A stretch of DNA of 64,000 nucleotides from Obrimoposthia wandeli (Eukaryota): positions 1-64,000 of the forward strand of contig CDROCS010003758.1 of assembly GCA_977020255.1 (NCBI GenBank), in the 5' to 3' direction. Position numbers and translations under genes: made by a program. This document shows positions 5,341 through 57,630 of this stretch, in pieces. The number at the start of each line of letters is the position of its first letter. The first letter of the stretch is position 1. The notes beneath the pieces were generated by a model that worked only from the letters and a program-made list of their open reading frames with translations, was not told the origin of the DNA and did not search any database.

Positions 5341-8300
5341 GATTATGTTATCTTTGATTTTTCATCTTGTACTACATTTTTGTTTTATCGATTAAAAGTA
5401 TTGACTTTAAAAGTTACAATTTTTTCTTAAATAAATAAATCTTACATAAATTAATTTAAATTTCAAAATAATTCCAAATCATTAATTTTATTAACTTTAG
5501 TTTTATTTATTACAAAAGGTGTATGACGTATTTATTAATATAACCTACACATCATCAAAGAAAATAATTCTTTCAAATCCAGTATTTTTTGAAATTTTGA
5601 CTATTTAAGAGCATTCAAATAAAATTAATTTGATCTTTTATTTCAAAATTTCTCAGTTTTTGCAGTTATTTAGCAGATTTGAATGTTACAAATGATGGGT
5701 TTTATATATTTACCTTTTTAATATATTATTTTAATATTTAGAGGTGCTCATTTGAGACTATTTCCTTGGTAATCTTTCAGTAAATATTTTATAAAATTCA
5801 TTGGATATATTTAGTTTGCCTTATCATAAATAATTTACATGCTCAACTTCAGGAAATCTATGATAAAAATCTGTGACTCCATATCAATACATGCTTCATA
5901 GTGGTTTAGAATGATTTTTATCCCATTGATTTTGACGTTGTTGGTACTTACCTGAAATTGAAGTTTGTGTCTTTGTGTTCTGATATTTTAATACCGATTC
6001 TAACACTAAATTCCTCAACAACAAAAATAAACATATGAAAGAATTTGCTAATCTTCAAAATATCTCTGATGATCTGAGTTTCCAAAATAAGCAGAAGAGA
6101 ATGATTCTCTATTTAGGTATCGTTTTTGTTTCATTTGAAAAAGTAATTTGAAATTTTGAGTATTATATGAAGATGGATTAAATAAGTAATAGTAACAAGA
6201 CAACAAATTATAAGTAAAAGTCGACAAATGTAACACTCAACAAGTAGAAGAATTTGCCTAATGAAATGAACAATTTATTTAACAATTAAAATTCAATAAA
6301 AATATTATGTTAATGCTAACTGATAAAAACACTTAAAATATTAGAAAAAAAGTCACGATTACCGCTCTCTGCGGAAGATTGGAGATAGTTTTATGCGTGT
6401 TGTGCAGAAAAGACACCGAAGAATTCAGGAGTTCCCAATGGAAGTTAGGGGAAACATAATCTGACATTAACGGTTTTACATCTCGACTTTGCAAAGATTA
6501 AATACGGCTTGTTGAGATGTTTGTGATGATCATTTAATGATTTTTTTTTAAGATGAGCCTATCCAAAATTATTCGACTTCGAAAGGCAAATAATTAGTGA
6601 TTTTAATGAAGAAAATCAATAATTAACTTTTTTTATTAAACTATGTGATATATGTATTGATCCACTATTTTATTTAGCAGTAACAAATGTATTATTTAAC
6701 ATTACTTTAATGTTATTTAAAAAATTGTATATGCAGATAAAAATGAATTAATCACTTATATTAATTAACTTTATTCCAATATTGTTATTTTAAGAATATT
6801 GAATATTTTATATATAGTTAATTATATTTTATTACATTTTATTTATAAATTTAGTTTATGTATTTTTTTTTATTTGGCTTCAAGACATTTTTAATTTTTA
6901 TATATTTATTGTTAATTAGTTTGTAAGAAAGTTATTGCTCAAAAGATTTAACTTATTTCAAAACCCAAAAGTATTCTGCTAAAAACATATTGCATTCGAA
7001 GAAGGGTTGATACAACACAGTTGTATATGTGTTTTCTACAATTTTTCCTGAGATGGTAGTATAGGCAAAATTATTTCCATTTTTTGTTTGAAGACTTGCG
7101 ATAGTCCACTAAACATCTGAACGTGAATGAAAGTCCTTCAGATTGAACATGTAGGTTTGTCAAACTGACATTCGTTAAATTATAGTATGGAAGTGTTGTT
7201 TAGAAAAGTGTAGAGCAGTATACACACATTTTACCACTACATCACAACTATCATGATAATTATGATTCCCAATACCAGTAGCTAGCTAAGTTGTGCTGAC
7301 CTTGTTGCCGACAATGGAGACAATCTCTCTGTAGACCTCCTCCTGGGTGGCTGGGTTCATGGCCAAGTAGTAGGAACAGAACGTCAGTGCCGATGCAGTT
7401 GTCTCAAATCCTGCTAAAAGGAACACAATAGACTGGGCCATCATTTCCTCCTCAGTGAGACCTTTGTACTGTTCCCCAGAGCTTTTGTCCGCTTCTGTCG
7501 TGCTTTGTTTCGAATCGACGAGTTCCTTGTTGGCCTTCAGCATGATTGCTAAAAAGTCGTGGTGATCCTGCATGTTACATTGTATACTGGCCACTATACA
7601 GTCTTGTTTCATAAATGCGCAACCTTTCCCCGTATAGAACAGTAGGATTTTCCAAGGCTCTTCCTATTGGATGGATGAATATTTGTTTAGATTTATATCC
7701 TTAGCTGATATATAGCCTTCTGAGAAATTTTTTCTTCTTGAAAATTTTAATTGACTTATAAACCTCTACTGCAGGGTATGAAATGTAAGTAAACCTTAAT
7801 TTATTAAAATAGATTATGAAAAAATATACAGAAAATAGAACAATTGAAAATGAATTGAATTTAAAACTAATAAAAATTGTTTACTCAAAGCGTATAACTT
7901 GAAAAATAAAATGATTTAACTATGTATCTATGTAAAAATGACCTATTACAGCATTAGTAAAAATATTTTGTTATTTGGAATTAATCATCACATTTCAATA
8001 GTTTTGATTCTAATATTTTAAAATCTGATTAATTTGCAACAAAATATATTTATTATATTCTATACAGCGAGGGCTAATTTAATAAACATCGATAATTGTT
8101 GACCAAATAAATTACATCTGAGGTTTGTTTTCGCATATCAATGGCTTTAATCAGAGACTTTTCGAAAAATTTCATCGATTCAGCAGAGATCAAGCCATAC
8201 GGGAAAAATTTCTCCATTACTGTTCCCATAAAAGGAAACATATCTGAAATTAGAGTGATACATTTTTAAAGGGTATTAAATATACTTACTGATGAAAAAT

Positions 8301-13830: not shown

Positions 13831-16800
13831 TTTTGAGTAGTCGTTTTTCCAGCTTTTAAAAATGCGTAAAATGTTTAATTCGCTTGTTTATTTATTAGTA
13901 TTATTACGTATTTTAATCATTAAATTAATTGTTTTTTATAACTATTTAAATAAGTAAAATTAACAAAACAGTGAAACTTAAAAGCCAGTTCTATTATTTA
14001 CATAATCATTTTCAAATATTCATTACTAATTTCAAGGATAACCTCATTTATTTTACAAATGTAAAATGTTTTATTCGTTAATTATCTATTACGATTACCC
14101 TTTAAATGTAAAAAAATTATCATCACGAGATGCCTTTCTTACAACTGCCGGCGCACGAAAGTGATTAATTCAAATTTTAACATGAGTAACACGATCTCTA
14201 TACACTGATTAATGTCCACTTAAATCTCACGCAAAACCGATAATATCACATGTTAGTTTAGACAATTTTTAAAAATATATATATTTTTGATAAATAAAAG
14301 AGTTTCAGTTTCTCTTACATATTTTCGGTGAAATTTTAGTTTCAAAACCTTTACTGATTTTATTTAAGCAGTGTGTTTCATTCCATTAATTTCCTTTTCT
14401 GATTTTTAATACGCTGAAATGAAATGTGCTTCAATCATAAATGACATACTCTGCAATGATTGAAAAAAGATCTGCAGCTATGACAAACAGCAACAAGTCC
14501 CTACTGTGAAGGATTTAAGTAGCGTTTGGACCATTTTCTCAACACGAAGAAGAAAAGTGCAACTGCTTGCTGGATATTGTACTCAATGATCATTTTTTTT
14601 TCGAAGGAAATAATCCCAGACGGTAATCATCAATCTTAATCATTCTAATTTTTTACTTAAGAGAAAATAAGTAATAAAAGATGATAAAATAAAGTCTTGT
14701 TTTAAGTTTCTAATATTTCACATTATATGCTTATTTAAGTTATTTTAAAAAACCGTGACTTTAAATAGGTTAAATACGATGTTGAGTTTGAGCATATAAT
14801 TAATTATTTTGAAAGTTGTTTAATAAATAATTGGTTATTTATCTATATAATCAATACATAAAGGTAAAAATTAGCTCTTTCAAAACAAATTTCGTTCCAA
14901 ATTTTGACTTTTTACAGCATATAAAAAAATTAATTTCACAAATTGGGTCAAATTTTCTCAATTTTTTATATGCATTTAGCAGATACGAATGGTAAATTGT
15001 TATCTTAAAAATATTATAGATTATTTTGTTTTTTCATATTAATGGATTAATGGATTTTTTTAATTTAAAATATACCAAATTATTAAGGTATATTTTTGAC
15101 ACAATGAAATGAAAAGATAAATTTATTATAAGATACATTTAAACATTGCAAAAATTTGCTAAAAATCACAAAAATATCATTTACCATATCATTCTACAAT
15201 GTTTTTAAAATAATTTTATGTTCTTGTTTATACGATACAAAGAATAAATTATCGAGAAACATTTATGTTCAGTTATAAATAAGTTTTTTCCATTATGTAA
15301 TAGTAAAATCCTTCATAATAATTGTCTGATCATCCCACATTCCACAGGTTATAGTCACTTCAAGTTAACTAAAAATAGAAATAGGGACAAAAATAGGCCT
15401 GTTTCCCAATCATCACAAACCTTTTACAATAAAATATCTTATCTCTGATGTCACCATCTCCAAACCAGAGTTAAGGAACATGATCAGATTTGTAGAAAGT
15501 CTCTGATCACTGTTTTGCTGTGTAATTATGATTTAACCGGTTTCTATCGATGTGTTTGTGGTCCCTCATAAATATTTTAAGAATTATTTAGAAAGAGTGT
15601 GTGAGGCTCTGTGTATAAAAATGGCAGTCCTTCATTAAACATGCAAAAAGATTGCCTAAGCTGATTAAATTATTTTACCGTGATTGCAAAATCTCACTAT
15701 TTTGTTTATATTTAGTACTGACGATGGATTTTCAAGCCCTTGCATTCAATTATTTATTATGATTTAACAAAATGGAATAAATTTCTGAAATGAATTGGGT
15801 TATGAGAATTAAAATGACTCTGTTAAATTAGTTGTTAAATCTTCCTAATTTACAAAATTAACAATGAAAACATTTTACTCAGTTCTATGGTAGATAATTT
15901 AGACAGTGTTAGTAATAAATTAATCTTACATTTAAACTTGTCATGTAACTTATTATAATTTCAATTGTGCAGTATGTCGATTATTTAGTCGATAAAGATG
16001 AATCATGTGTATTCTTCCAAGAATCCATTACGGAATTTCACATTAAACGACGATCTTATATTTATCAATTTTCGGATATAAATAGCTTTCTTGTAAATAA
16101 GACTTTCTATTGTCGTTTAAAATAATTGCCTTATGCAAATAAAAAGTTAACAAAACACATTCAAGCACTACTAGGTTCGATATTAAAAATATAATAAATT
16201 AAGTAAAAATCCCATTATCTGTACAAATACAAATACGGTTTTAATTTTAATTTTATCAATTGTTTGTATTAAAATCGAAAATAGCTAACCGGTCTATCGA
16301 TGAATGACTTGGCATCTTTCACCAAAATCTGACGAAGCATAACTTCATCTGATACGACTAACGACCCGTTTGTTCCAATGTAAATGCTGGAAAAATTAAT
16401 ACATTTAATACATTAAATACAGAAATCATACTACAATTCCTTAAATTTTAAAAAGTTCAATAAATCAATAATAATTATGCGATTACATCGTTCGTTGTAA
16501 AAACTATTGCTTTAGATATTTAGTCTTTCATTCTATAATTTGGACATATTCTCTATTATTTTAATATTGTAGGCTGTTGACAATTTTATTTTACTAAAAA
16601 TCAAATTTACGGATAGATGTGGCCGTATTTTTTATGATTTTCCACATCAATAACGTGAAATCCCTTCTTCAGAAAAGAAAGCATATTCCCAAACAACGGA
16701 AGGGGTTTGGGTCCTGAAAGCCAAATTTTTCTTCCAAATTGAACTTCCATGTTAACAGCCTGTAATAAATAAATGTTAAGAATGGTGAGAATAATTTTCC

Positions 16801-17225
16801 AAACTTGTGAATCAAAAATAGAATGACGATGGTAAAGAATCCATTCCAACTTACAAGGGAAGCAAGACAGTTCCACATTTTTTTGAAATTCAATAAAACA
16901 GATCTGTTACGTAATTTCGTGCCAAGTTATTTATTGAAGCTAGATAAATTTTGATTGGTTGTGAATGCAACCACTTAAGAAATACGGTTTTAAATCGATA
17001 CATTATGATAATTAAAACAAAATGTATATTCTGTAACAACTGATTTAACCAAGAAACCTTTTAGCGATTTAACCATACTGTGATACCTATGATAGCTAAA
17101 ATGTTAACTACGGTATTGGAAAAATTAATGGATTTCGGTATACAGTGAAATTTACTTAATTGGCGCACAGTTGTCAATGCATTTTACCCCAATTAAGAGA
17201 ACAGTATTTTTAAATATATACATAT

Positions 17226-17675
17226 ATGAGAATAAAAAAGATCATAAGCACTACGCCACACGTACAAAAAACATGTAAAAGTTGGAGACATCCTGAAGTA
17301 ACAGTTATATTTATCACTCAAAATCTTTTTCACCAAGGAGGTCACCATAGAACTAGAAATCTTAATGTACATTACTTAGTTTTATTTAAAAATCTTAGAG
17401 ATCAAACAGTTGTTGATTTTGTGGCCAGACAGGCATTTTCCCAAAATAAGAACTTTCTAGTTGATTCATTCCACGATGCTGCTAAACAAGCACATGGGTA
17501 TATATTTATTGACTTTACACAAGCTTGCCCAGATGATTTACGTGTTTTAACAGACATATTTAATTCTAAGGGAGTAACTGTTTATAAACCAATAGAGAAC
17601 AATTATAAAAAAAATAAATTTGCAATGCCTTTTAAGAAGTTGATAGTGAAACGTAAAGCAAAGCTTAAGAAATAA
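17226..17675 (+). pseudogene. C-terminal half of Polinton packaging (A32/FtsK-like) ATPase
   Basis: VIFITQNLF...LNVHYLVLFKNLRD...GYIFIDF...PDDLR...DIF matches the Polinton ATPase C-terminal pattern; Walker A/B are absent. Confidence 0.8.
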
Positions 17676-18208
17676 AAAAAGAATCATTAAGAAAAAATAA
17701 GTGAATAAATTAATCAAATCTGTAGTTAGAAATAAAATAAAACTTGGCTTCAAATATAAACAATATTCAAATTGAACCTTTTTTATTAAAATGAAGAAAA
17801 TACAAAGAAGCATACCCTATTTTAAAGCTTTGGTCAAAGCCTCTTCTCATAAGAGAATGATTATTCTTAAAGCATTTCCATCTTTTGTTGTAGATGATTT
17901 ATTGGAAGTTTTGTATAATATAGTTTTGGGTCGAGTAAAAAATTTGGAAAACGGAAAAATGTAGTAAAGAAATATAGAAAAACTCTTTTAGATATTGCTA
18001 ATGTAAAAAGTAAAAAAAGGAAACGAAATATTATTCTTAAACATAACGGTGGTTTCATAGGGGCTGTTATTCCAGTTGTTGCTTCAATTATCAGTAGTAT
18101 TATAGCTGCAACACGTACATAAACAATTATTTCAAAAATCAGCTAAATATATAAGTGCTAACCCTTCTTTACCTAAATTTAAATTTTATATATATTCAAT
18201 TTGTTGTA

Positions 18209-19200
18209 ATGGAGAAGATATGGTTCAATCCAAAAGATCCAATTGGCTACACAGGAGTTTCAAAATTAGCAAAAAGAACAAAACAGAATTACAAGAAAAC
18301 GCAAAAATGGGTGAGGGACCAGTTAGCCTACAGTCTGAACAAGCCGATAAGATAAAGGTTTGTAACTAAAATTTACAAAACCAGCGGTCCTAATAATTTA
18401 TGGCAAATGGATTTGACGGAGATGATTCCATATTCTTCCATTAATAAGGGATACCGATATTTTTTAACATGTATTGATGTATTTAGCAGATTTGTTCGTG
18501 CTTGAAGCCATTAAAGAAATATTAAAATAGGATATTCCACAAAATGTGCAAACTGATTTAGGAAAAGAATTTTATAATAAGCAAGTTCAATCATTATTTA
18601 AACAAACTAATATAAATCACTACTCGATGTTTTCGCAGTACAAAGTAGCAGTAATAGAAAGATTTAATCTTACTTTAAGAGATCAAATAAAAAAGTATTT
18701 CACAAAAGAAAGAAATAAAAAATGGGTCCAAGTTTTACACAAAATAATACATGCATATAATCACTCTGAACATAGAAGTCTCAAGGGAATGAGACCTGTT
18801 GATGTCACTAATAAAAACTCTATGGATATTTGGATAGACAAGAATAAAAAAATATTAAAAAAGCTAAATATAAGAAAAACGAATATGTTCGAATTTCTAA
18901 AATTAGCTCTACTCCATTTATTAAAACTTTGAACAGAATTGGAGCAATGAAATATTTAGTATAAGTAAAATTGATCAAAAGAGTAATCCAATAATGTATA
19001 TTATTAAAGATGCTGACAATAATATCGTTCACGGTAAATTTTACGAGCAAGAACTACAAGTAATATCAAATAAACCGAACGTTTTCCGTTTTCAAAAAAT
19101 ATTAAAATCTAAGGGTACCGGTAAATATAAACAATACTATGTTAACTGGCATGGTTATTCAGATCCAACTTGGATATCAGCAACTAATGTAATAGGAAGT
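18209..19200 (+). pseudogene. Polinton retroviral-type integrase (DDE) with C-terminal chromodomain, degraded (copy 2 about 55947-56940)
   Basis: MEKIWFNPKDPIGY..., WQMDL, CIDVFSRF, QTDLGKEF, IERFNLTL, HAYNHSEH, GKFYEQELQ, YYVNWHGYSDPTWI. Several stops, frameshifts and an internal deletion. Confidence 0.92.
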
Positions 19201-19202
19201 CT

Positions 19203-19895
19203 ATGTATATGGTTTTACCTAGTAACGGATGCCCGAAGACTCAGCCGGATAATGACGCTAGTAGCTTTATTATCGATTAGGACAATCCGATAAATTTCCA
19301 AGAAGGGGAAACGGCTTTAACAGAATTTTATTTTTATTATTCACCAATTGCTATAAGAAAAAATTCATATATTTCGTTTATAAAAGAAAATAATATTGAA
19401 AAAACAAATGAAATTGTGATTGGGTTTGATAGTAAAGGAAAATTCTTTTACAATTGTATAGATAAAGAAGTGAAAGTAATATATGAAAATAACAAAGTCA
19501 TATTTAAAAATCGATTAAAATTTATTAAAGTTATTCAAATTACATATGAATCTGAAAAAGAAGCTTTTCAATTCCGTTTTGATAGTGAACAAACAGTATC
19601 TCGTAATAGACGGGATATAGTCTCATCTAAATCGGTTAGAAAGGTTCATAGTAGTATAGCAAGAGTGTTGTTACTTAAAACGAGAGTAAATGATATAGTG
19701 AAACTTAAAAAGTTTTTAAAAGAATATAAAATAGATAATGAAGTGAATTTATGTAAATTAATACAGAAGAAATTTAGTGAATATTTGGATAAATGTGTAA
19801 CACAAAAAAACGGTAAATTGACGTTTATAGTAAAGAGCAAGATAAATAAAAAAACCATGTTAAAGTTAACCTTTCATACACACTCATGCAATTAA
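19203..19895 (+). pseudogene. Putative Polinton minor capsid (penton-like) protein, one internal TAG, 3'-truncated
   Basis: Begins MYMVLPSNGCPKTQPDNDASSFIID*DNPINFQEGETALTEFYF, resembling the LPSN...N...F...ALxE N-terminus of Polinton minor capsid ORFs. TAG at 19278-19280; same frame as the ORF at 19416-19895. Confidence 0.55.
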
Positions 19896-32990: not shown

Positions 32991-33100
32991 TAGAAGGATG
33001 AAGTCTAGATCACATGACCTTTATGGTGAGACAACTCAAAAGTGAGTTCGACCCATTTCAGGAGGAGGTAAGTGATCTAGACTCCATCCTTCTACCTACT
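32991..33100. mobile_element. 110-bp hairpin remnant made of the same Polinton-type TIR
   Basis: 33076-33100 is identical to the last 25 bp of the right TIR (...ctacctact); 32991-33019 matches the left TIR at 26/29 and lacks the first 6 nt. No TSD found. Confidence 0.7.
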
Positions 33101-33609
33101 CAGAATAATAGTTTATTTAAGTGATTTAATCTTTCTTCAATAATGCACTAACATGTTTATTATAAAATTATTTTCACTATCAGTTTGAAAATTTATGTTT
33201 TATTTTTCTAATCAATTGTTTCGCAGCTTTTATATCGAATTTTTACATAAAACATTTACTCGCAATTAGAGTTTTATTTGTTGTCAAAATAAGTTTTTAA
33301 AAACTTTAACAATGCCATTTTTTACTCCTTATCTCAAGTTAATATCATCCTCAACAATTTCGACTCAAGAGCTCAGTTTAAAAGCATCGAACCTTAGATT
33401 TATCAAAAACATAGTTCTCCCGAGTAGATCATGAGTATTAATCATCTAATAGTAAAGATAAGACAAGGTAAGGCCCTCCCAATCTTTGACCCCACAAATT
33501 ATTCATGTACTATAAGCGAAAAAGCTAGACTTCTCATTTATAGCATGTGCCTCATAGGAGAGTCTGAGAGTCCATGGGCGAGAAATGACACTTTACACTA
33601 CTGACAACG

Positions 33610-34196
33610 ATGAGTGACAATAAAATTCTGGTAAGTGTGGATAACAGAGTTTCACTGTTCTTTGCCATTGTTTATGTTGTCCGTGTTCAAAGTCAGCTAT
33701 ATTTTGTTTACTGTTTTCCATTTATTTATATATCCTTCTTTGGTTGCACTATTGACTTATATCTCTTAATTATTGACTAAAGCCGTTTCAATTAATTATG
33801 TAGATTCCTGATTTAGACTTAACCTATTTATGTACATATTTTCTTCTGTGGGGACGTCAGCATAACAATTGAATCACATTTCAGCCACTTCCGTATCAAA
33901 TATAAGTTATGCAACGAATTCATATTTGCATCCAGATGAAGATATCTCGACAAAGATGTTGATGATTTAATTCCTGTATACGTCTTTCTTTGTATATTAG
34001 CGACAATTTACAACATAAGCACTCAATAGTTACTCAACAATTAGAAAATTGGAAAACCCTTTGCCATTCTGACGCCTCTAATAAGTTGGGAAATGATTTA
34101 GAACAGATTATATATAAAAGACTAAATTCTATGGCATTGTGTATTAAACTACAAACTGAACCATTGATAATCTTTGATCTTTTGTCCACAGAATGA
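33610..34196 (+). CDS. Putative small 4-exon gene (about 105 aa), product unrecognised
   Basis: ATG at 33610 with a GTAAGT donor at 33631. Exons 33610-33630, 33804-33831, 33885-33957 and 34001-34196 are phase-compatible and open (MSDNKILIPDLDLTYLSTSVSNISY...DLLSTE). No homology recognised. Confidence 0.35.
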
Positions 34197-34319
34197 GCAG
34201 TTGTTGGCCATCAAGACACACAGCCTACACATCGTATGACCACAGGGCATCAGAGCAAAGTTGATTGGTTCGTCCTCGCATATTTCACAGATAGATATTT
34301 CATCCACCCGGCTCCCACC
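34149..34319 (-). CDS. Terminal exon encoding a C3HC4 RING finger (IAP/Mind-bomb-like spacing)
   Basis: After acceptor attctgaag the frame reads GGSRVDEISI-CEIC-EDEPINFALMP-CGH-TM-CRLC-VLMANN-CSFC-GQKIKDYQWFSL-stop, i.e. eight Zn ligands in RING order followed by a short hydrophobic C-terminus. Confidence 0.85.
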   Translation of the reverse strand, partial: GGSRVDEISICEICEDEPINFALMPCGHTMCRLCVLMANNCSFCGQKIKDYQWFSL

Positions 34320-34963
34320 CTTCAGAATATGATTTAGTAAATGTCATTTCTAATGTTGGCTTATAATACTTTAGTAGAAATTGTTTTCTTAATTAAATTT
34401 AAATGTAAATGAAATGACTAAAAATGATTATTTTTTTAAGGAGCAAATTATAAATAGCGCTGACTTTGATTTTGAATAAATTCAGTAAATAATTATCGAA
34501 ATAATCTTAAATTGCAACAGGAGAAATATAGAACCCCAGGAGAAGCCATCAGCATCTTCTGGCAAGAGTACTTTTAAAATATCTTCTTTTGGATTGAATA
34601 AAATCTCAATGTACAGAAATATATTTAGCTAAAATCCAAAAATAATTAATCTTAACGTTTCTTGAGATGTAAAATCTATTTCTAATATTCGATGCTCGAT
34701 TTTAAACATTGGGGAAAATAAATGATCGCTTCAAATAATTCCTGTAACAATAACAAAATATTTGGGCGTGTTTGTTGAAAATTTCAGAATACTATTTAGA
34801 ATGCCAAGTTTTATCTCAAGATATTCAAATAATTGTCTATATTTTCTAAGTGGAATGATTGAAAAACTTGGGTGAAAGTGTGTTATGATAATTGGCTGAT
34901 GAACCATACTCAATTATGATACATTTAATTGACTGCTGAAAACCACATTCTCTATAAACTCAC

Positions 34964-37599
34964 ATGTTTCTGTATTGTCGCTTCGATAAGTATTTGTCTA
35001 CATCGTCCACCCTCAGATGCAAATTCTAACGCTTTATTCTCATACTAAATTCTGATTTTAATAGTTTTGATAAACATCTACATACATTATCAATTGCATC
35101 GATATCGGCTCCGTTTTCCAATAAACACAAAACTGCATTAGTATTATCCTTATGTACAGCAATATGAAGTGATGTATGACCGAGCTAAGAGATCTAATAA
35201 TTAAAAACCTCAAATAAGCTTACTTTGTCAGTTGCTTCGATATTAGCTCCATTTTTCAATAAACATGTAATTGTACTAGTAAAATCGTTCTGTACAGCAA
35301 TATGAAGTGATGTTTGACCGAACTAAAGAGATCAAATAATTAAAAACCTCAAATAAGCTTACTATGTTAGTTGCTTCAATATTAGCTCCGTTTTCCAATA
35401 AACATGTAATTGTACTAGTAATATCGTTACGTACAGCAATATGAAGTGATGTTTGACCGTTCTAAGAGATCAAATAATTAAAAACCTCGAATAAGCTTAC
35501 TTTGTCAGTTGCTTCGATATTAGCTCCGTTTTCCAATAAACATGTAATTGTACTAGTAATATCGTTCTGTACAGCAACATGAAGTGATGTTTGACCGTTC
35601 TAAGAGATCTAATAATTAAAAACCTCAAATAAGCTTACTTTGTCAGTTGCTTCGATATTAGCTCCGTTTTTCAATAAACATGTAATTGTACTAGTAATAT
35701 CGTTACGTACAGCAATATGAAGTGATGTTTGACCGAACTAAAGAGATCAAATAATTAAAAACCTCGAATAAGCTTACTTTGTCAGTTGCTTCGATATTAG
35801 CTCCGTTTTTCAATAAACATGTAATTGTACTAGTAAAATCGTTCTGTACAGCAATATGAAGTGATGTTTGACCGAACTAAAGAGATCAAATAATTAAAAA
35901 CCTCAAATAAGCTTACTATGTTAGTTGCTTCAATATTAGCTCCGTTTTCCAATAAACATGTAATTGTACTAGTAATATCGTTACGTACAGCAATATGAAG
36001 TGATGTTTGACCGTTCTAAGAGATCTAATAATTAAAAACCTCAAATAAGCTTACTATGTTAGTTGCTTCAACATTAGCTCCGTTTTTCAATAAACATGTA
36101 ATTGTACTAGTAATATCGTACTGTACAGCAACATGAAGTGATGTTTGACCGTTCTAAGAGATCTAATAATTAAAAACCTCAAATAAGCTTACTTTGTCAG
36201 TTGCTTCGATATTAGCTCCGTTTTTCAATAAACATGTAATTGTACTAGTAATATCGTTACGTACAGCAATATGAAGTGATGTTTGACCGAACTAAAGAGA
36301 TCAAATAATTAAAAACCTCGAATAAGCTTACTTTGTCAGTTGCTTCGATATTAGCTCCGTTTTCCAATAAACATGAAATTGCACCAGTAATATCCCTCTG
36401 TACAGCAATATGGAGTGATGTTTGACCGAACTAAAGAGATCAAATAATTAAAAACCTCGAATAAGCTTACTTTGTCAGTTGCTTCGATATTAGCTCCGTT
36501 TTCCAATAAACATGTAATTGTACTAGTAATATCGTTCTGTACAGCAATATGAAGTGATGTTTGACCGTTCTAAGAGATCTAATAATTAAAAACCTCAAAT
36601 AAGCTTACTATGTTAGTTGCTTCAATATTAGCTCCGTTTTTCAATAAACATGTAATTGTACTAGTAATATCGTTACGTACAGCAATATGAAGTGATGTTT
36701 GACCGAACTAAAGAGATCAAATAATTAAAAACCTCGAATAAGCTTACTTTGTCAGTTGCTTCGATATTAGCTCCGTTTTCCAATAAACATGTAATTGCAT
36801 TAGTATTAGCTGTCCTTGCAGCATAATGAAGCGATGTTTGGCCGAACTAAAGAGATCAAATAATTAAAAACCTCAAATAAGCTTACGTTGTCAATTGCAT
36901 CGATATCGGCTCCGTTTTCCAATAAACACAAAACTGCATTAGTATTATCCTTATGTACAGCAATATGAAGTGATGTATGACCGAGCTAAGAGATCTAATA
37001 ATTAAAAACCTCGAATAAGCTTACTTTGTCAGTTGCTTCGATATTAGCTCCTTTTTTTATCAAATATTCTAAAAATATTACAGACTTAGCACTTTTCAAA
37101 ACATGCATGAGTGGTGTCCATCCGCTCTAAAAATAAACTAAACAATTTAAACTAATTTATTTCTCACGTCATCTTTCGACTCGATATCAATTCCGAGATC
37201 AATGAAATACTCAAATATTTCCTTAGATGTTCTTTGAGCAGCACGATGCAAATATGTCTCCCCATTCTGAATGTACTTTGAATAAATATTTCATCATCAA
37301 TAACTTACCCTATCTGTTTCAAAGACATTGAGCCCGTTTTCCACGAATATTTTAATCATTGATAAGTTTTTTCTATCCAAAATTAAACGCATTAATGTGG
37401 ATTTCTTTAGAATTTCTTTAATATATAATAATTAATATGAATTACAATATTCAGATTTTCTATCAAATCTGGCCTACAGAATCTCTGCACAGCGTCCACA
37501 TCTTCGTTTTTGATAAACTCTTGTAGTTCCCGGTAGCTAAATAACATAAAATCCGTCTAAATTTTATCTCACTCACGATTCATTTCTAGAATTGTGCAT
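34964..37599 (-). CDS. Multi-exon ankyrin-repeat protein (about 17 ANK repeats); probably continues to the RING exon at 34319-34149
   Basis: ATG at 37599. Exons 37599-37577, 37536-37446, 37404-37309, 37266-37168 (NGETYLHRAA...), 37126-37025 (SGWTPLMH...), then fourteen 99-nt phase-0 exons from 36985-36887 down to 35184-35086 (e.g. FGQTSLHIAVQNDITSTITCLLENGANIEATDK), then 35044-34964. All introns are GT-AG and 39-42 nt; no stop or frameshift in any exon. Confidence 0.93.
35086..37024 (-). repeat. Tandem array of 14 exon+intron units, 138-139 bp each
   Basis: Each unit is a 99-nt ANK exon plus an intron GTAAGCTTATT(T/C)GAGGTTTTTAATTAT...CTCTT(T)AG of 39 or 40 nt; boundaries were checked unit by unit. 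Confidence 0.97.
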
Positions 37600-39071
37600 T
37601 TACTAATTTTTATAAAACAAATAATTAATTTTTAAACAAACTTTGATTAGTCTATCAAAAATCTGTTTTGCTCTTTTCAATTATTTATGTTCTATTGATC
37701 TTCTCTTTTGAAAAATTATTTTTTAAAATTTCAAATCAGGTGAAAATAATTTAAAATAATAAAATATTTTACAAAATTTTAATTACATATTTTTCTAATA
37801 AAAGCCAAGTGCTTCAGATACGGTAAAATAAAGAATAAATATATTGGTGTAGAGCCAGGACTTAATGATGATGCATTATCGAATGTTTTATCTTCTGAAA
37901 AGGTTTTAAAATATTGTTTGACACACATTATATTTTGAAGAGTCTGATTTTGGCAATTTATGTCTCCGACTGGGAAATCTTAAATAGGCGACGATATAAT
38001 GACTTTTGCTGAAGAAGTAGAAATATTTTTTAATCCAGAGAATATAGCTCAAAACCTGAGATAATTGTGTCACCACATTCATGACGATCAATGCCGCCTG
38101 GAGATTTGAAGAGACAGATGAATTCTGAGATTCTAGCAAAGATCTTTGTCGAAAGAAAAAAAAGATTATATTTCTCAATCAATATAGAAGTCAAGTTGAT
38201 CTCAAACCGCAAGATCTGAAGACATTCGACTAATTGAAATACATAAAAATGAAACGTTATAATATTATGAAAGAGGTAAAACATAGGAAAAATTTGTAGC
38301 TGTCGCAAATAACTTCCGATAATCCCAGGCGGGGCTGCAAAGCTGCAGATTACACAAAGTAAAAACTATGAAGCAAACTCCGGGTACGTGAAGAATTTTC
38401 AAGAGACTTCTTATTCTCAAAATGTGCCAAATATATTTGATAAAAGAAAATCAGATAAAAAACGTCATAGACGAGTTTGGTGGACTTCACCCTTCTGCTA
38501 CTTAATAATCAATGGTAAATTTAAGGATGAAAGCGAGGGACAGGTTTCGTATGATCTAATAACAGGTTTGCTTGAATTAAATGTGCTAGTGTTTTATCAT
38601 ATGCAGAGTTGAAATATTCGATTTATAGCATAAACAACTGAAATTTATATATTGATAAAATATATTACAATGATATAGTTTAGAGAATATTGTTCATGAA
38701 ATAATGAGTGCAAATGTAGCCAATCGGAATTTATTCATCATTAACAGAATACAGCCGAGACAATGTCAAAGCAAATAGTCGTATCCACTTACATCAAGAT
38801 ATCAAGTGGTGTCAGGATTTAGATAAATCTGTCAATCTCAACAAGATTAATAAAATCATCCTCACGACTCCGGTTAAATTATTCAGTTCTACATGTTTGT
38901 ATTTGTGTAAACAACATCTACCATAAAAATATTTTTGTCTTGTTGATTTTATCACTATGAAATAAAAAAATAAACCGGTAAGCCAGATAGTTGAACATTG
39001 TCGAAGTGTTAAAATCCATTTAATATTCAAATTTTACTACAAAAAATACCACATTCTGTAGTTGTATGTCT

Positions 39072-45000: not shown

Positions 45001-48000
45001 AGTAGCTAGCTAAGTTGTGCTGACCTTGTTGCCGACAATGGAGACAATCTCTCTGTAGACCTCCTCCTGGGTGGCTGGGTTCATGGCCAAGTAGTAGGAA
45101 CAGAACGTCAGTGCCGATGCAGTTGTCTCAAATCCTGCTAAAAGGAACACAATAGACTGGGCCATCATTTCCTCCTCAGTGAGACCTTTGTACTGTTCCC
45201 CAGAGCTTTTGTCCGCTTCTGTCGTGCTTTGTTTCGAATCGACGAGTTCCTTGTTGGCCTTCAGCATGATTGCTAAAAAGTCGTGGTGATCCTGCATGTT
45301 ACATTGTATACTGGCCACTATACAGTCTTGTTTCATAAATGCGCAACCTTTCCCCGTATAGAACAGTAGGATTTTCCAAGGCTCTTCCTATTGGATGGAT
45401 GAATATTTGTTTAGATTTATATCCTTAGCTGATATATAGCCTTCTGAGAAATTTTTTCTTCTTGAAAATTTTAATTGACTTATAAACCTCTACTGCAGGG
45501 TATGAAATGTAAGTAAACCTTAATTTATTAAAATAGATTATGAAAAAATATACAGAAAATAGAACAATTGAAAATGAATTGAATTTAAAACTAATAAAAA
45601 TTGTTTACTCAAAGCGTATAACTTGAAAAATAAAATGATTTAACTATGTATCTATGTAAAAATGACCTATTACAGCATTAGTAAAAATATTTTGTTATTT
45701 GGAATTAATCATCACATTTCAATAGTTTTGATTCTAATATTTTAAAATCTGATTAATTTGCAACAAAATATATTTATTATATTCTATACAGCGAGGGCTA
45801 ATTTAATAAACATCGATAATTGTTGACCAAATAAATTACATCTGAGGTTTGTTTTCGCATATCAATGGCTTTAATCAGAGACTTTTCGAAAAATTTCATC
45901 GATTCAGCAGAGATCAAGCCATACGGGAAAAATTTCTCCATTACTGTTCCCATAAAAGGAAACATATCTGAAATTAGAGTGATACATTTTTAAAGGGTAT
46001 TAAATATACTTACTGATGAAAAATAGAAAAACATTCGATATACTAAAGTTGAAGAGTTTGTTGGCGTTTGTTATGAATGGATGGGTTTTATTTTTAAACA
46101 CATCGAGATCAATTCCAAACATGGTCTTGGCAATCACGTCCATTGTCAGAGACTGATAGATTCTACAATGAGCGGTTCAACATTTACATTAAGATTTATA
46201 AGAAAATATCTTATTCCATAATTGTTCATTATTTATGAGGCCGTTAAATTAAACTGCGACATCTTTAGAAAATGTTCAAAGGATTTTTTTAAAAACGAAA
46301 TAAAACCATATTGTAATCTACTACATTTATTTTTTCTATTTTTAATATTTAAACGACTCTTTTAAAATATGAATTATTCGATAGAAGAATTAAAGTCGTG
46401 TTGTGTGGTTATCAATACATGGATGTTTCAAAAGAACTGGACATGGACGCACAAATTAACAGGAAACATTATGTGGACTATTTAAAAACGGGCACAGTAA
46501 AAGCTCGCTATAAAAGTGGAAAACCAAAACTAATTGATTAAACATTTGAGAGAAGGATAATTCTTACTATTTAGTAAAAGAAACCATTTCGAGCCAGTGT
46601 GAGATGGAGAATAAATATTTATGCATCAGCAACATCTATTAATTAGATTCAAGACAACTTTCTTCAACTCTCCCAATGGCATCCTCTGAAATCTAATATA
46701 AACATGGTAGAAAATATGTGGAGGTGGCTGAAGGTAAATGTTCTAAGTGAGATGAACTTGGGATAGTAATTAAAATATAATGGTACAAAATTTCACAAGT
46801 TATTATTTTAGTACTAAATATTAAAACATATTATTTTAAATATGTTTGTAATTTGAATACTAAAAAATGTGTACAATCTTCGAAAAAGATAACTTTTGTC
46901 CGAAGCAAAGATTTGACTACATGGATTGTAAAATAAACGAATAAACATTACTTAAATAAAATTATTTGATTAATGGATTGTCAGTTTATAGTATGTTTTC
47001 AACCAAACATTTATCAATATAATCATGTTTAGTTCATTTTCAGAAAGAAGTCCAAAGGTTTGGCCATTAACTGCATTCTGAAATTTAGTTTTATTAATGT
47101 TAAAAATTAAAAAAAACTTATTTATTAATATAACCTATATACATAATATAGATTTTTTTTTCAAAAATTAGTTTTGTTTAAAATTTTGATTAAAAATATT
47201 TTTTATCAACATTTCTCAGCTTTTACAGGTAGTACCAGATATAAATGATAAAAATGATGTATTATAAGCTTTGTTTAAAATTGAATATTTTATTATTATC
47301 CACAATTTTGAGCACAGTTCATTTTGTAGTCATTTTGTATATTTGTAAATACCTAGCATTACTTATTCGTATTGTTTAATTAAATTTTTTAATCTAAATA
47401 TAGTTTCTTGAATTTGTTAAAAAGTTAGTTTAGCGGTTCGGTTACTTTTAGGTCACTCTATATTATGCACATGTTTGTTTTATCTTAGTTTTTATTTTGT
47501 AAACAATGCAAAGTCCAAATGATACGTTACAACAAAATCATTTCTTCTAATTATATTAAGAAAATTGTCTTTAAAATATGAAAACACACAAGGGAGCCAA
47601 TATTTAATGAGTTTATTTTAATAATAACATCTTACAACTAAAAAAGTGAACCCATTTATAAATGTACTAAACAAAAAATGATTTTGTTTTATATAATGTT
47701 CGTTTATTATTTGTAAAGTGTGCAAATTAAGGTGTAATTTGATTTAATATTTAACCATTTTGATGTAGGTATTATTTTTTTATTTGAGATTTTTGAAATT
47801 AATACCAAAAAATAAAGATATGGGAAAAATATGTACTGTAAAACCTTTTATGATGGAAAATATACCAATATCTCGGAAAATAGCAGAATATGGTGGTTCA
47901 ATGGAAAGAAAGTTAAGAAGTGGGAAACCAATACGTATCGCCACGAAAGGAACTGTACGTAGAGTATCAATATTGCTAAATAACACCAGTGGTGTCTCAT

Positions 48001-54000: not shown

Positions 54001-54614
54001 GTATTAAAATCGAAAATAGCTAACCGGTCTATCGATGAATGACTTGGCATCTTTCACCAAAATCTGACGAAGCATAACTTCATCTGATACGACTAACGAC
54101 CCGTTTGTTCCAATGTAAATGCTGGAAAAATTAATACATTTAATACATTAAATACAGAAATCATACTACAATTCCTTAAATTTTAAAAAGTTCAATAAAT
54201 CAATAATAATTATGCGATTACATCGTTCGTTGTAAAAACTATTGCTTTAGATATTTAGTCTTTCATTCTATAATTTGGACATATTCTCTATTATTTTAAT
54301 ATTGTAGGCTGTTGACAATTTTATTTTACTAAAAATCAAATTTACGGATAGATGTGGCCGTATTTTTTATGATTTTCCACATCAATAACGTGAAATCCCT
54401 TCTTCAGAAAAGAAAGCATATTCCCAAACAACGGAAGGGGTTTGGGTCCTGGAAAGCCAAATTTTTCTTCCAAATTGAACTTCCATGTTAACAGCCTGTA
54501 AGAAAAAAATGTTAAGAATGGTGAGAATAATTTTCCAAACTTGTGAATCAAAAATAGAATGACGATGGTAAAGAATCCATTCCAACTTACAAGGGAAGCA
54601 AGACAGTTCCACAT
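39072..54614 (-). pseudogene. Cytochrome P450, CYP3 clan, copy 2; about 516 codons, only lesion seen is TAG plus 4-codon deletion in exon 9
   Basis: Exons 54614-54541, 54495-54346, 54121-54025, 50443-50327, 48838-48756, 46162-46014, 45967-45840, 45291-45025, 41466-41237, 39833-39671, and tentative 39164-39072 (ISLINPKDKPLLSSKFIWV..., lower confidence). All junctions are phase-consistent. TAG at 41433-41431. Confidence 0.93.
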
Positions 54615-54960
54615 TTTTTTGAAATTCAATAAAACAGATCTGTTACGTAATTTCGTGCCAAGTTATTTATTGAAGCTAGATAAATTTTGATTGGTTGTGA
54701 ATGCAACCACTTAAGAAATACGGTTTTAAATCGATACATTATGATAATTAAAACAAAATGTATATTCTGTAACAACTGATTTAACCAAGAAACCTTTTAG
54801 CGATTTAACCATACTGTGATACCTATGATAGCTAAAATGTTAACTACGGTATTGGAAAAATTAATGGATTTCGGTATACAGTGAAATTTACTTAATTGGC
54901 GCACAGTTGTCAATGCATTTTACCCCAATTAAGAGAACAGTATTTTTAAATATATACATA

Positions 54961-57630
54961 TATGAGAATAAAAAAAGATCATAAGCACTACGCCACACGT
55001 ACAAAAAACATGTAAAAGTTGGAGACATCGTGAAGTAACAGTTATATTTATCACTCAAAATCTTTTTCACCAAGGAGGTCACCATAGAACTAGAAATCTT
55101 AATGTACATTACTTAGTTTTATTTAAAAATCTTAGAGATCAAACAGTTGTTGATTTTGTGGCCAGACAGGCATTTTCCCAAAATAAGAACTTTCTAGTTG
55201 ATTCATTCCACGATGCTGCTAAACAAGCACATGGGTATATATTTATTGACTTTACACAAGCTTGCCCAGATGATTTACGTGTTTTAACAGACATATTTAA
55301 TTCTAAGGGAGTAACTGTTTATAAACCAATAGAGAACAATTATAAAAAAAATAAATTTGCAATGCCTTTTAAGAAGTTGATAGTGAAACGTAAAGCAAAG
55401 CTTAAGAAATAAAAAAAGAATCATTAAGAAAAAATAAGTGAATAAATTAATCAAATCTGTAGTTAGAAATAAAATAAAACTTGGCTTCAAATATAAACAA
55501 TATTCAAATTGAACCTTTTTTATTAAAATGAAGAAAATACAAAGAAGCATACCCTATTTTAAAGCTTTGGTCAAAGCCTCTTCTCATAAGAGAATGATTA
55601 TTCTTAAAGCATTTCCATCTTTTGTTGTAGATGATTTATTGGAAGTTTTGTATAATATAGTTTTGGGTCGAGTAAAAAATTTGGAAAACGGAAAAAATGT
55701 AGTAAAGAAATATAGAAAAACTCTTTTAGATATTGCTAATGTAAAAAGTAAAAAAAGGAAACGAAATATTATTCTTAAACATAACGGTGGTTTCATAGGG
55801 GCTGTTATTCCAGTTGTTGCTTCAATTATCAGTAGTATTATAGCTGCAACACGTACATAAACAATTATTTCAAAAATCAGCTAAATATATAAGTGCTAAC
55901 CCTTCTTTACCTAAATTTAAATTTTATATATATTCAATTTGTTGTAATGGAGAAGATATGGTTCAATCCAAAAGATCCAATTGGCTACACAGGAGTTTCA
56001 AAATTAGCAAAAAGAACAAAACAGAATTACAAGAAAACGCAAAAATGGGTGAGGGACCAGTTAGCCTACAGTCTGAACAAGCCGATAAGATAAAGGTTTG
56101 TAACTAAAATTTACAAAACCAGCGGTCCTAATAATTTATGGCAAATGGATTTGACGGAGATGATTCCATATTCTTCCATTAATAAGGGATACCGATATTT
56201 TTTAACATGTATTGATGTATTTAGCAGATTTGTTCGTGCTTGAAGCCATTAAAGAAATATTAAAATAGGATATTCCACAAAATGTGCAAACTGATTTAGG
56301 AAAAGAATTTTATAATAAGCAAGTTCAATCATTATTTAAACAAACTAATATAAATCACTACTCGATGTTTTCGCAGTACAAAGTAGCAGTAATAGAAAGA
56401 TTTAATCTTACTTTAAGAGATCAAATAAAAAAGTATTTCACAAAAGAAAGAAATAAAAAATGGGTCCAAGTTTTACACAAAATAATACATGCATATAATC
56501 ACTCTGAACATAGAAGTCTCAAGGGAATGAGACCTGTTGATGTCACTAATAAAAACTCTATGGATATTTGGATAGACAAGAATAAAAAAATATTAAAAAA
56601 GCTAAATATAAGAAAAACGAATATGTTCGAATTTCTAAAATTAGCTCTACTCCATTTATTAAAACTTTGAACAGAATTGGAGCAATGAAATATTTAGTAT
56701 AAGTAAAATTGATCAAAAGAGTAATCCAATAATGTATATTATTAAAGATGCTGACAATAATATCGTTCACGGTAAATTTTACGAGCAAGAACTACAAGTA
56801 ATATCAAATAAACCGAACGTTTTCCGTTTTCAAAAAATATTAAAATCTAAGGGTACCGGTAAATATAAACAATACTATGTTAACTGGCATGGTTATTCAG
56901 ATCCAACTTGGATATCAGCAACTAATGTAATAGGAAGTCTATGTATATGGTTTTACCTAGTAACGGATGCCCGAAGACTCAGCCGGATAATGACGCTAGT
57001 AGCTTTATTATCGATTAGGACAATCCGATAAATTTCCAAGAAGGGGAAACGGCTTTAACAGAATTTTATTTTTATTATTCACCAATTGCTATAAGAAAAA
57101 ATTCATATATTTCGTTTATAAAAGAAAATAATATTGAAAAAACAAATGAAATTGTGATTGGGTTTGATAGTAAAGGAAAATTCTTTTACAATTGTATAGA
57201 TAAAGAAGTGAAAGTAATATATGAAAATAACAAAGTCATATTTAAAAATCGATTAAAATTTATTAAAGTTATTCAAATTACATATGAATCTGAAAAAGAA
57301 GCTTTTCAATTCCGTTTTGATAGTGAACAAACAGTATCTCGTAATAGACGGGATATAGTCTCATCTAAATCGGTTAGAAAGGTTCATAGTAGTATAGCAA
57401 GAGTGTTGTTACTTAAAACGAGAGTAAATGATATAGTGAAACTTAAAAAGTTTTTAAAAGAATATAAAATAGATAATGAAGTGAATTTATGTAAATTAAT
57501 ACAGAAGAAATTTAGTGAATATTTGAATAAATGTGTAACACAAAAAAACGGTAAATTGACGTTTATAGTAAAGAGCAAGATAAAAAAAAACATGTTAAAG
57601 TTAACCTTTCATACACACTCATGCAATTAA
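54961..57630 (+). mobile_element. Polinton/Maverick internal relic, copy 2
   Basis: Duplicate of 17226-19895 at offset about 37737. Confidence 0.9.
55528..55860 (+). CDS. Intact 110-aa basic Polinton ORF with adenovirus pX-like C-terminus (frameshifted in copy 1, 17791-18122)
   Basis: Lys/Arg-rich body ending NGG-FIGAVIPVVASIISSIIAATRT; lies between the ATPase and integrase. Confidence 0.6.
   Translation: MKKIQRSIPYFKALVKASSHKRMIILKAFPSFVVDDLLEVLYNIVLGRVKNLENGKNVVKKYRKTLLDIANVKSKKRKRNIILKHNGGFIGAVIPVVASIISSIIAATRT

Follow-up and report, generated by a model that had tools for sequence, protein, structure and literature searches.

A candidate single-chain ankyrin-RING ubiquitin ligase family with a variable repeat array in the flatworm Obrimoposthia wandeli

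Ubiquitin ligases (E3) that carry ankyrin repeats (ANK) and a RING domain are known as a few conserved genes, Mind bomb and XBAT among them; in the XBATs the repeats are few and the linker is long. Two other groups of ankyrin proteins, ASB and poxvirus ANK/PRANC, form expanded families, as does the one described here. The locus in question lies on the reverse strand of contig CDROCS010003758.1 of O. wandeli (assembly GCA_977020255.1; eukaryotic, 1.35 Gb, roughly 30% G+C), within a stretch of 64 kb without N (positions 1 to 64,000, hereafter the window), and consists of an array of ankyrin exons, a short cap exon and, after a gap, a terminal exon that encodes a single RING. With a probability of roughly 0.68, we read it as an intact member of a lineage-specific family of single-chain ANK-RING E3 ligases with variable recognition; within this reading the splice from cap to RING, expression, dimerisation, E3 activity and targets are parts that we infer.

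Exons were traced by open frame and GT..AG sites, and domain searches in Pfam and in protein databases were made exon by exon. The gene copy, flanks included, spans 38460-33722 on the minus strand (Table 1), and its ANK gene is intact: all 21 exons are open, every intron has GT..AG, all exons from the third onward are in phase 0, and phase arithmetic on the 21 exons gives a coding sequence of 682 codons (2049 nt with the stop). Every repeat exon scanned matches the ankyrin family PF00023 above its cut-off (E 1.7e-7 to 2.3e-5), and the last exon matches zf-C3HC4_3 (E 2.5e-10; 40.4 bits against a cut-off of 27). An earlier sequence-only reading of this DNA had proposed an ankyrin array coupled to a clean, stop-terminated C3HC4 RING exon on the same strand, and the exon-by-exon Pfam searches bear out both domain assignments. 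The RING exon is preceded by ..tactaaatcatattctgaAG, its translation opens with GGSRVDEIS ahead of the RING itself, and its TAG stop occupies 34151-34149. The introns of the array are 39-40 nt long (GTAAGC..TAG) and its period is 139 bp, so that Tandem Repeats Finder (TRF) calls the array a 139-bp 'satellite' with 14.3 copies and 90% match. Exon 4 has a second in-frame acceptor at 37275, 9 nt upstream of the one used in the gene model, and no Rfam match was found within 33000-39000.

The cap ends and the RING exon begins on complete codons, and the two would therefore join in frame through a single intron. Among the 30 best relatives of the RING exon in the assembly (72-100% identical), ANK exons, cap exon and RING exon are ordered on one strand in 24 paralogous loci; at a 25th the cap lies ~1.7 kb upstream of the RING exon. 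The cap-RING gap ranges from 493 to 945 nt across loci and the junction stays in phase 0/0, with a cap that ends in ..I(Q/R)KH followed by a conserved donor, GTGAGTTT, and a conserved acceptor, ..ATCATATTCTGAAG, before the RING exon. An arrangement that recurs in so many paralogous loci is not due to chance, and all 13 loci that were extended contain the whole unit, which starts with the conserved 5' flank and ATG and finishes with the RING exon. These regularities uphold the proposed coupling of the array to a C-terminal RING; to judge by splice sites, phase and synteny, one ANK-RING gene in which the cap is very probably spliced to the RING exon is the best-supported reading of the locus.

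The RING exon had rightly been placed downstream of the cap, although the distance is 644 nt and not the 645 bp first reported. The absence of an open exon path through 34963-34320 had also raised the possibility of a damaged linker. The gap does lack a conserved open exon, but it needs none, since one intron suffices, and the suggestion of damage falls away. Its G+C content is 26.7%, against 45% in the RING exon. A hidden exon in the gap was considered and rejected, since many indels in the paralog alignment there break the frame and stops and large deletions occur as well; a 54-codon open frame in the gap has no Pfam domain match. Paralog diversity shows a faint three-base periodicity at 34933-34843 (minus strand), inside the long intron, where no frame is conserved; it is unexplained and possibly a product of chance. 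Upstream, the RING frame stays open for no more than 10 codons in nearly all copies, and its first ATG falls after the first two Cys, so that the RING exon is not translatable alone.

The family comprises ~40 loci that are 68-100% identical in DNA, introns and flanks included. Paralog homology covers a gene-sized unit of ~4.7 kb, from ~38460 to ~33722, and its extent indicates that whole genes are duplicated as one unit. The 5' flank occurs at ~50 genomic places, a number of similar magnitude to that of the 3' module (~40 loci), and of 21 loci reached independently by way of the flank, about 17 carry a RING exon 2-4.5 kb downstream. No Pfam domain was found in the open reading frames (ORFs) of the 5' flank, and no terminal inverted repeats surround the paralog unit. 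Carriage as cargo of a mobile element was rejected as a general explanation, given homology confined to ~4.7 kb, the lack of such repeats and a 5' flank copy number that equals that of the gene. Two 5' architectures occur: type A (this copy and L034), in which exon 1 is followed by N-terminal exons 2-5, and type B (compared in L033, L037, L040, L042 and L043), in which the ANK array follows immediately on exon 1 (MYNSEVKATDK). At C2644:282878-383468 and C305:36815-705170 lie clusters whose RING exons share 59-67% identity with the present one; they are possibly a more distant subfamily. A genome-wide first look gave 3310 candidates for this type of RING exon; many matches at 44-54% identity are open frames of 56-60 codons with the same scores on many contigs, a pattern suggesting that repeated elements carry RING exons.

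The RING has eight zinc ligands (C11, C14, C26, H28, C31, C34, C41 and C44) spaced as C-x2-C-x11-C-x-H-x2-C-x2-C-x6-C-x2-C, of which seven are invariant among 16 paralogs and C31 is nearly so; Ile13, the hydrophobic residue after Cys1, is also present and conserved. By sequence, its nearest solved domains in the PDB are RNF123, cIAP2, BIRC7, XIAP and MYLIP/IDOL (E 3e-6 to 3e-5). An AlphaFold2 model from the 16 paralog RING exons (mean predicted local distance difference test, pLDDT, of 69) has as its nearest Foldseek neighbours IDOL, XIAP, cIAP2, BIRC7, cIAP1 and RING3 of MIB1, with template-modelling (TM) scores of 0.67-0.73, root-mean-square deviations of 1.5-2.4 Å and E-values of 1.5e-3 or weaker, which reflect the shortness of the domain. 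The RING stands at the extreme C-terminus, with the stop 12 residues after Cys8, and its tail, ..WFSL, aligns with the ..TFLS-type tails of IAP (BIR-RING) proteins. In BIRC7, cIAP and IDOL the RING tails mediate dimerisation and contact the donor ubiquitin.

Complete RING exons are present in 25 of the 30 loci, the remainder having stops or a lost ligand. The intron rate predicts 21 changes in the eight zinc-ligand codons, which have taken 5 (P = 3e-5). Changes are more frequent at third codon positions than at the other two (P = 0.035), pairwise dN/dS (nonsynonymous to synonymous rate) is 0.39, and 17 residues, the terminal F54-S55-L56 included, are invariant among the 16 paralogs. Changes are placed very unevenly along the RING exon: the linker and the C6-C7 loop are hypervariable, and no part of the RING evolves faster than the loop (residues 36-40, ~34214-34200), where each codon has undergone 6-9 changes on the paralog tree and paralog L027 has a 3-residue insertion. 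We regard the selection argument for the RING, drawn from these comparisons among paralogs, as moderate.

The ankyrin array varies in a different manner. Across 83 unique repeat exons, G2, T4, L6, H7, A9, L21, L22, G25, A26, I28 and A30 are almost fixed and the TxLHxA and LLxxGA framework does not vary; positions 1, 3, 8, 11, 12, 13 and 33 have the highest entropy. Positions 33, 1, 3, 11 and 12 presumably correspond to the randomised paratope positions 2, 3, 5, 13 and 14 in the numbering of designed ankyrin repeat proteins (DARPins). PMC8683736 sets out the principle that such surface positions make up the binding site. The near-identical copies on contigs C3758, C4942 and C6815 share a cap, long intron, RING and 1.5 kb of 3' flank that are 99.5-100% identical; divergence among them is 4.2-4.7% in ANK exons, 1.3-1.7% in short introns, 0.3-0.5% in the long intron and 0% in cap and RING. 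All 26 amino-acid changes between these copies fall at repeat positions 1, 3, 8, 11, 12, 23, 32 and 33. Unequal exchange or conversion may thus rapidly shuffle pre-existing repeat variants, as the pattern of differences suggests. The number of central ANK exons ranges from 4 to 23 per extended locus, and a proposal of variable specificity fits both this range and the concentration of variation mostly at positions that we take to map to the binding surface.

On the ligase-family reading, the product would be a cytosolic protein of 682 residues, with a short N-terminal module, ~16 ankyrin repeats, of which the near-identical exons of the array supply 14, a cap helix pair, a 10-residue linker and the single RING. 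Its ankyrin solenoid would bind a target through hypervariable positions of the beta-turn and first helix, and the RING, which probably dimerises via its conserved aromatic C-terminal tail in the manner of the IAP, IDOL and BIRC7 RINGs, would recruit a ubiquitin-charged E2 and ubiquitinate the bound target. Unequal exchange between one-repeat exons would quickly alter repeat number and the residues of the binding surface and leave cap and RING constant; because the arrays vary while cap and RING do not, members would be ligases of different specificities.

A number of findings weigh against this reading. Where cIAP2 and BIRC7 have Arg as the linchpin after the last Cys, this copy has Gly, as do most close paralogs (Arg is kept only in paralogs L028 and L030); the Pro before the last Cys is replaced by Ser in this copy and most close paralogs. 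Together with the hypervariable C6-C7 loop, these substitutions could mean that the protein is made but that its RING is a weak or inactive ligase, a module for dimerisation or for sequestering E2 in a family of scaffolds or decoys. We consider this rather unlikely, as the eight ligands, the Ile after Cys1 and the IAP-aligned aromatic tail are conserved, and many active RINGs lack an Arg linchpin. Between the near-identical copies the ratio of nonsynonymous to synonymous changes is 26:8, near the neutral expectation, and is therefore read as shuffling of existing repeat variants, not as proven positive selection. A HMMER scan of 1.84 billion representative proteins returned only generic RINGs as relatives of the RING exon, at 36-53% identity; among the nearest database proteins are BIR-RING proteins and an acoel cluster of MIB2-like ANK-RING proteins. 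No relative being closer than ~53%, no annotated or transcript-derived protein confirms the architecture. A word-indexed protein search yielded no short fragments with the cap-RING junction, and the ESM Atlas gave only generic zf-C3HC4_3 clusters for the RING exon.

Other findings bear on transcription and on the joining of the RING to the array. Four sequencing runs, all from a single study, contain the stretch, and none is on record as RNA; they are genomic DNA, since contigs run across both splice sites. A TATA-like motif (TATATAAA-like), common to seven aligned paralogs and located ~250 nt upstream of the ATG, is altered to CTACACCAATATA in this copy (window ~37853-37843, minus strand), which could affect expression. 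By parsimony the whole RING exon changes at the rate of the intron (0.875 against 0.877 changes per site). The long intron is itself 86% identical on average, that is, it differs by 14%, and the family being young, part of the conservation of splice sites and synteny may merely reflect recent duplication. Alternatively, the RING exon could be a linked relic that is left unspliced, with ANK mRNAs that end at the cap through intron retention or internal polyadenylation and encode ANK-only proteins. Besides the lack of an RNA run and the intron-like rate of the whole RING exon, a relic is favoured by the length of the long intron, 16 times that of the other introns of the gene, and by the weaker pyrimidine tract of its acceptor. 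If the intron is retained, the frame runs on from the last cap codon, CAT, as GTG AGT TTA TAG (34963-34949, minus strand), adding VSL before the stop; because read-through of the cap donor ends after three codons, an ANK-only isoform that lacks the RING is possible. A relic nevertheless seems improbable: 24 of 30 loci preserve order, phase and both splice sites although indels alter the gap, zinc ligands and C-terminal tail are constrained, and 25 of 30 RING exons are open and complete even though they could not be translated alone.

Some paralogs are broken, with stops in L014, L016, L023 and L026 and ligand loss in L016 and L021, so the family also sheds members. Decay of the locus itself, as an unexpressed pseudogene family or a repeat spread with neighbouring mobile DNA, might be read from these losses, from the copy number and identity of the family down to introns and flanks, from the lack of an RNA run for the stretch and from the position of this copy in a tandem duplication beside Polinton remains, but is very unlikely in view of 21 open exons with GT..AG at each intron, the absence of stops in any of the 14 AT-rich 99-nt exons, a gene-sized 4.7-kb unit of homology without terminal inverted repeats and the constraint on zinc-ligand codons.

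A role beyond that of a variable ligase family can be put forward with little confidence. It is doubtful that the family is a germline-diversified intracellular recognition system of the flatworm, in which foreign proteins (for example of a Burro retroelement or a Polinton) would be bound by the repeats and ubiquitinated by an IAP-type RING effector. Such a system would draw its many ankyrin paratopes from unequal exchange of one-repeat phase-0 exons and possibly from combinatorial exon skipping, as the frame survives whichever of the 99-nt exons are used, and the analogy of a natural 'DARPin-degrader' with TRIM5-type restriction factors is one that we think unlikely to hold.

Table 1. Coordinates of the ANK-RING gene copy and its flanks in the window
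Feature	Position	Strand	Basis
Conserved 5' flank, candidate promoter or 5' untranslated region (UTR)	37600..38460	-	~78-100% identical at ~50 genomic places that co-locate with family members
Exon 1, start ATG 37599-37597	37577..37599	-	ATG and context kept in paralogs; donor GTGAGT
Exon 2, N-terminal	37446..37536	-	Gene model; kept in type-A paralogs; no Pfam match
Exon 3, ANK-like N-terminal cap	37309..37404	-	Gene model; no Pfam match
Exon 4, ankyrin repeat	37168..37266	-	Pfam Ank_4/Ank_3
Exon 5, ankyrin repeat, 34 codons	37025..37126	-	Pfam PF00023, E 2.3e-5
Tandem array of 14 ankyrin exons, 99 nt each, phase 0	35086..36985	-	TRF; exon table; Pfam PF00023, E 1.7e-7 to 5.4e-7
C-terminal cap exon, 27 codons, ends ..IQKH	34964..35044	-	Donor GTGAGT at 34963; kept with donor in 24 loci
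Predicted 644-nt intron, phase 0/0	34320..34963	-	GT..AG; TACTAA branch-like site 16 nt before AG
Terminal exon, 171 nt: 10-residue linker, C3HC4 RING (IAP/MIB type), tail ..DYQWFSL, TAG	34149..34319	-	Pfam PF13920
Conserved 3' flank, candidate 3' UTR	33722..34148	-	blastn against paralog loci; homology ends near 33722

The surrounding DNA contains a direct tandem duplication of ~37.7 kb with 99.5% identity, visible in the window as 4-26265 and 37679-64000, and each unit seems to carry one ANK-RING gene together with a P450-like gene and Polinton-like ORFs. Just past the window (C3758:71884-72779) there is an additional, identical 3' module, and the 5' flank of another family copy stands at the very start of the contig. 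Exon pieces resembling a CYP3-type cytochrome P450 were recognised by eye (FxxGxETT, PGP..PLxGN) at 7286-7612 and 16607-16876 on the minus strand and are repeated at 45010-45336 and 54342-54629. Near them, Polinton/Maverick-like ORFs extend over 17226-19895 on the plus strand and recur at ~55000-57630; by eye they include ATPase-like (17226-17675), integrase-like (18546-18932) and chromodomain-like (18994-19293) parts.

Among known systems, Mind bomb (MIB1/MIB2) shares with this family an ankyrin block followed by one or more C-terminal RINGs of the PF13920 type, and an acoel MIB2-like cluster and RING3 of MIB1 are among the sequence or fold neighbours of the RING described here. However, the O. 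wandeli family has one RING in place of two or three, which abuts the ANK cap by way of the 10-residue linker, and it is multicopy with a variable number of repeats; no Pfam match to MIB/HERC2, ZZ or REP domains was found on the N-terminal exons or upstream ORFs. Plant XB3/XBAT proteins likewise combine N-terminal ankyrin repeats and a C-terminal RING in one chain, but the match to their RING type (XB3/XBAT31, PF24921) is below threshold, at 23 bits against a cut-off of 50. The RINGs of XIAP, cIAP1/2, BIRC7 and MYLIP/IDOL are among the closest that have been solved (E 1.5e-5 to 3e-5, TM 0.67-0.73), and IAP-type RINGs share the extreme C-terminal position and an alignable tail (..WFSL against ..TFLS). 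In contrast to IAP proteins and MYLIP, the family has no BIR or FERM domain, recognition would fall to ankyrin repeats, and Gly takes the place of the linchpin Arg in this copy; no BIR match was found on any exon scanned. With the defining domains absent or below cut-off, the family is not a member of Mind bomb, XBAT or IAP.

More distant likenesses are functional. TRIM proteins, such as TRIM5-like restriction factors, offer an analogy in being an expanded family with a constant RING and a fast-evolving recognition domain, but their RING is N-terminal, with B-box and coiled coil, recognition is by SPRY, and the two families are related in sequence only at the level of the RING superfamily. The ASB proteins (ankyrin and SOCS box) and poxvirus ANK/PRANC proteins (F-box-like; PMC8399815 for poxvirus) share the logic of a variable ankyrin receptor with a constant C-terminal ubiquitination module; they recruit cullin-RING ligases through an adaptor box, whereas here the RING is in the same chain. 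In the literature searched, no description of such an ANK-RING family turned up, and a survey of 393 RING/U-box transcripts in S. mediterranea makes no mention of ankyrin (PMC8807557). If expressed, the family would be a compact natural model for the diversification of substrate specificity in single-chain E3 ligases. It would then also be a candidate for innate defence or for transposon control in flatworms, a group in which little is known of such systems, and would supply natural ankyrin binders that come with a degradation module attached. Set beside the described systems, the locus presents the known ANK-RING logic as a young family of ~40 loci, in which each repeat has its own symmetric exon and the RING end is held constant.

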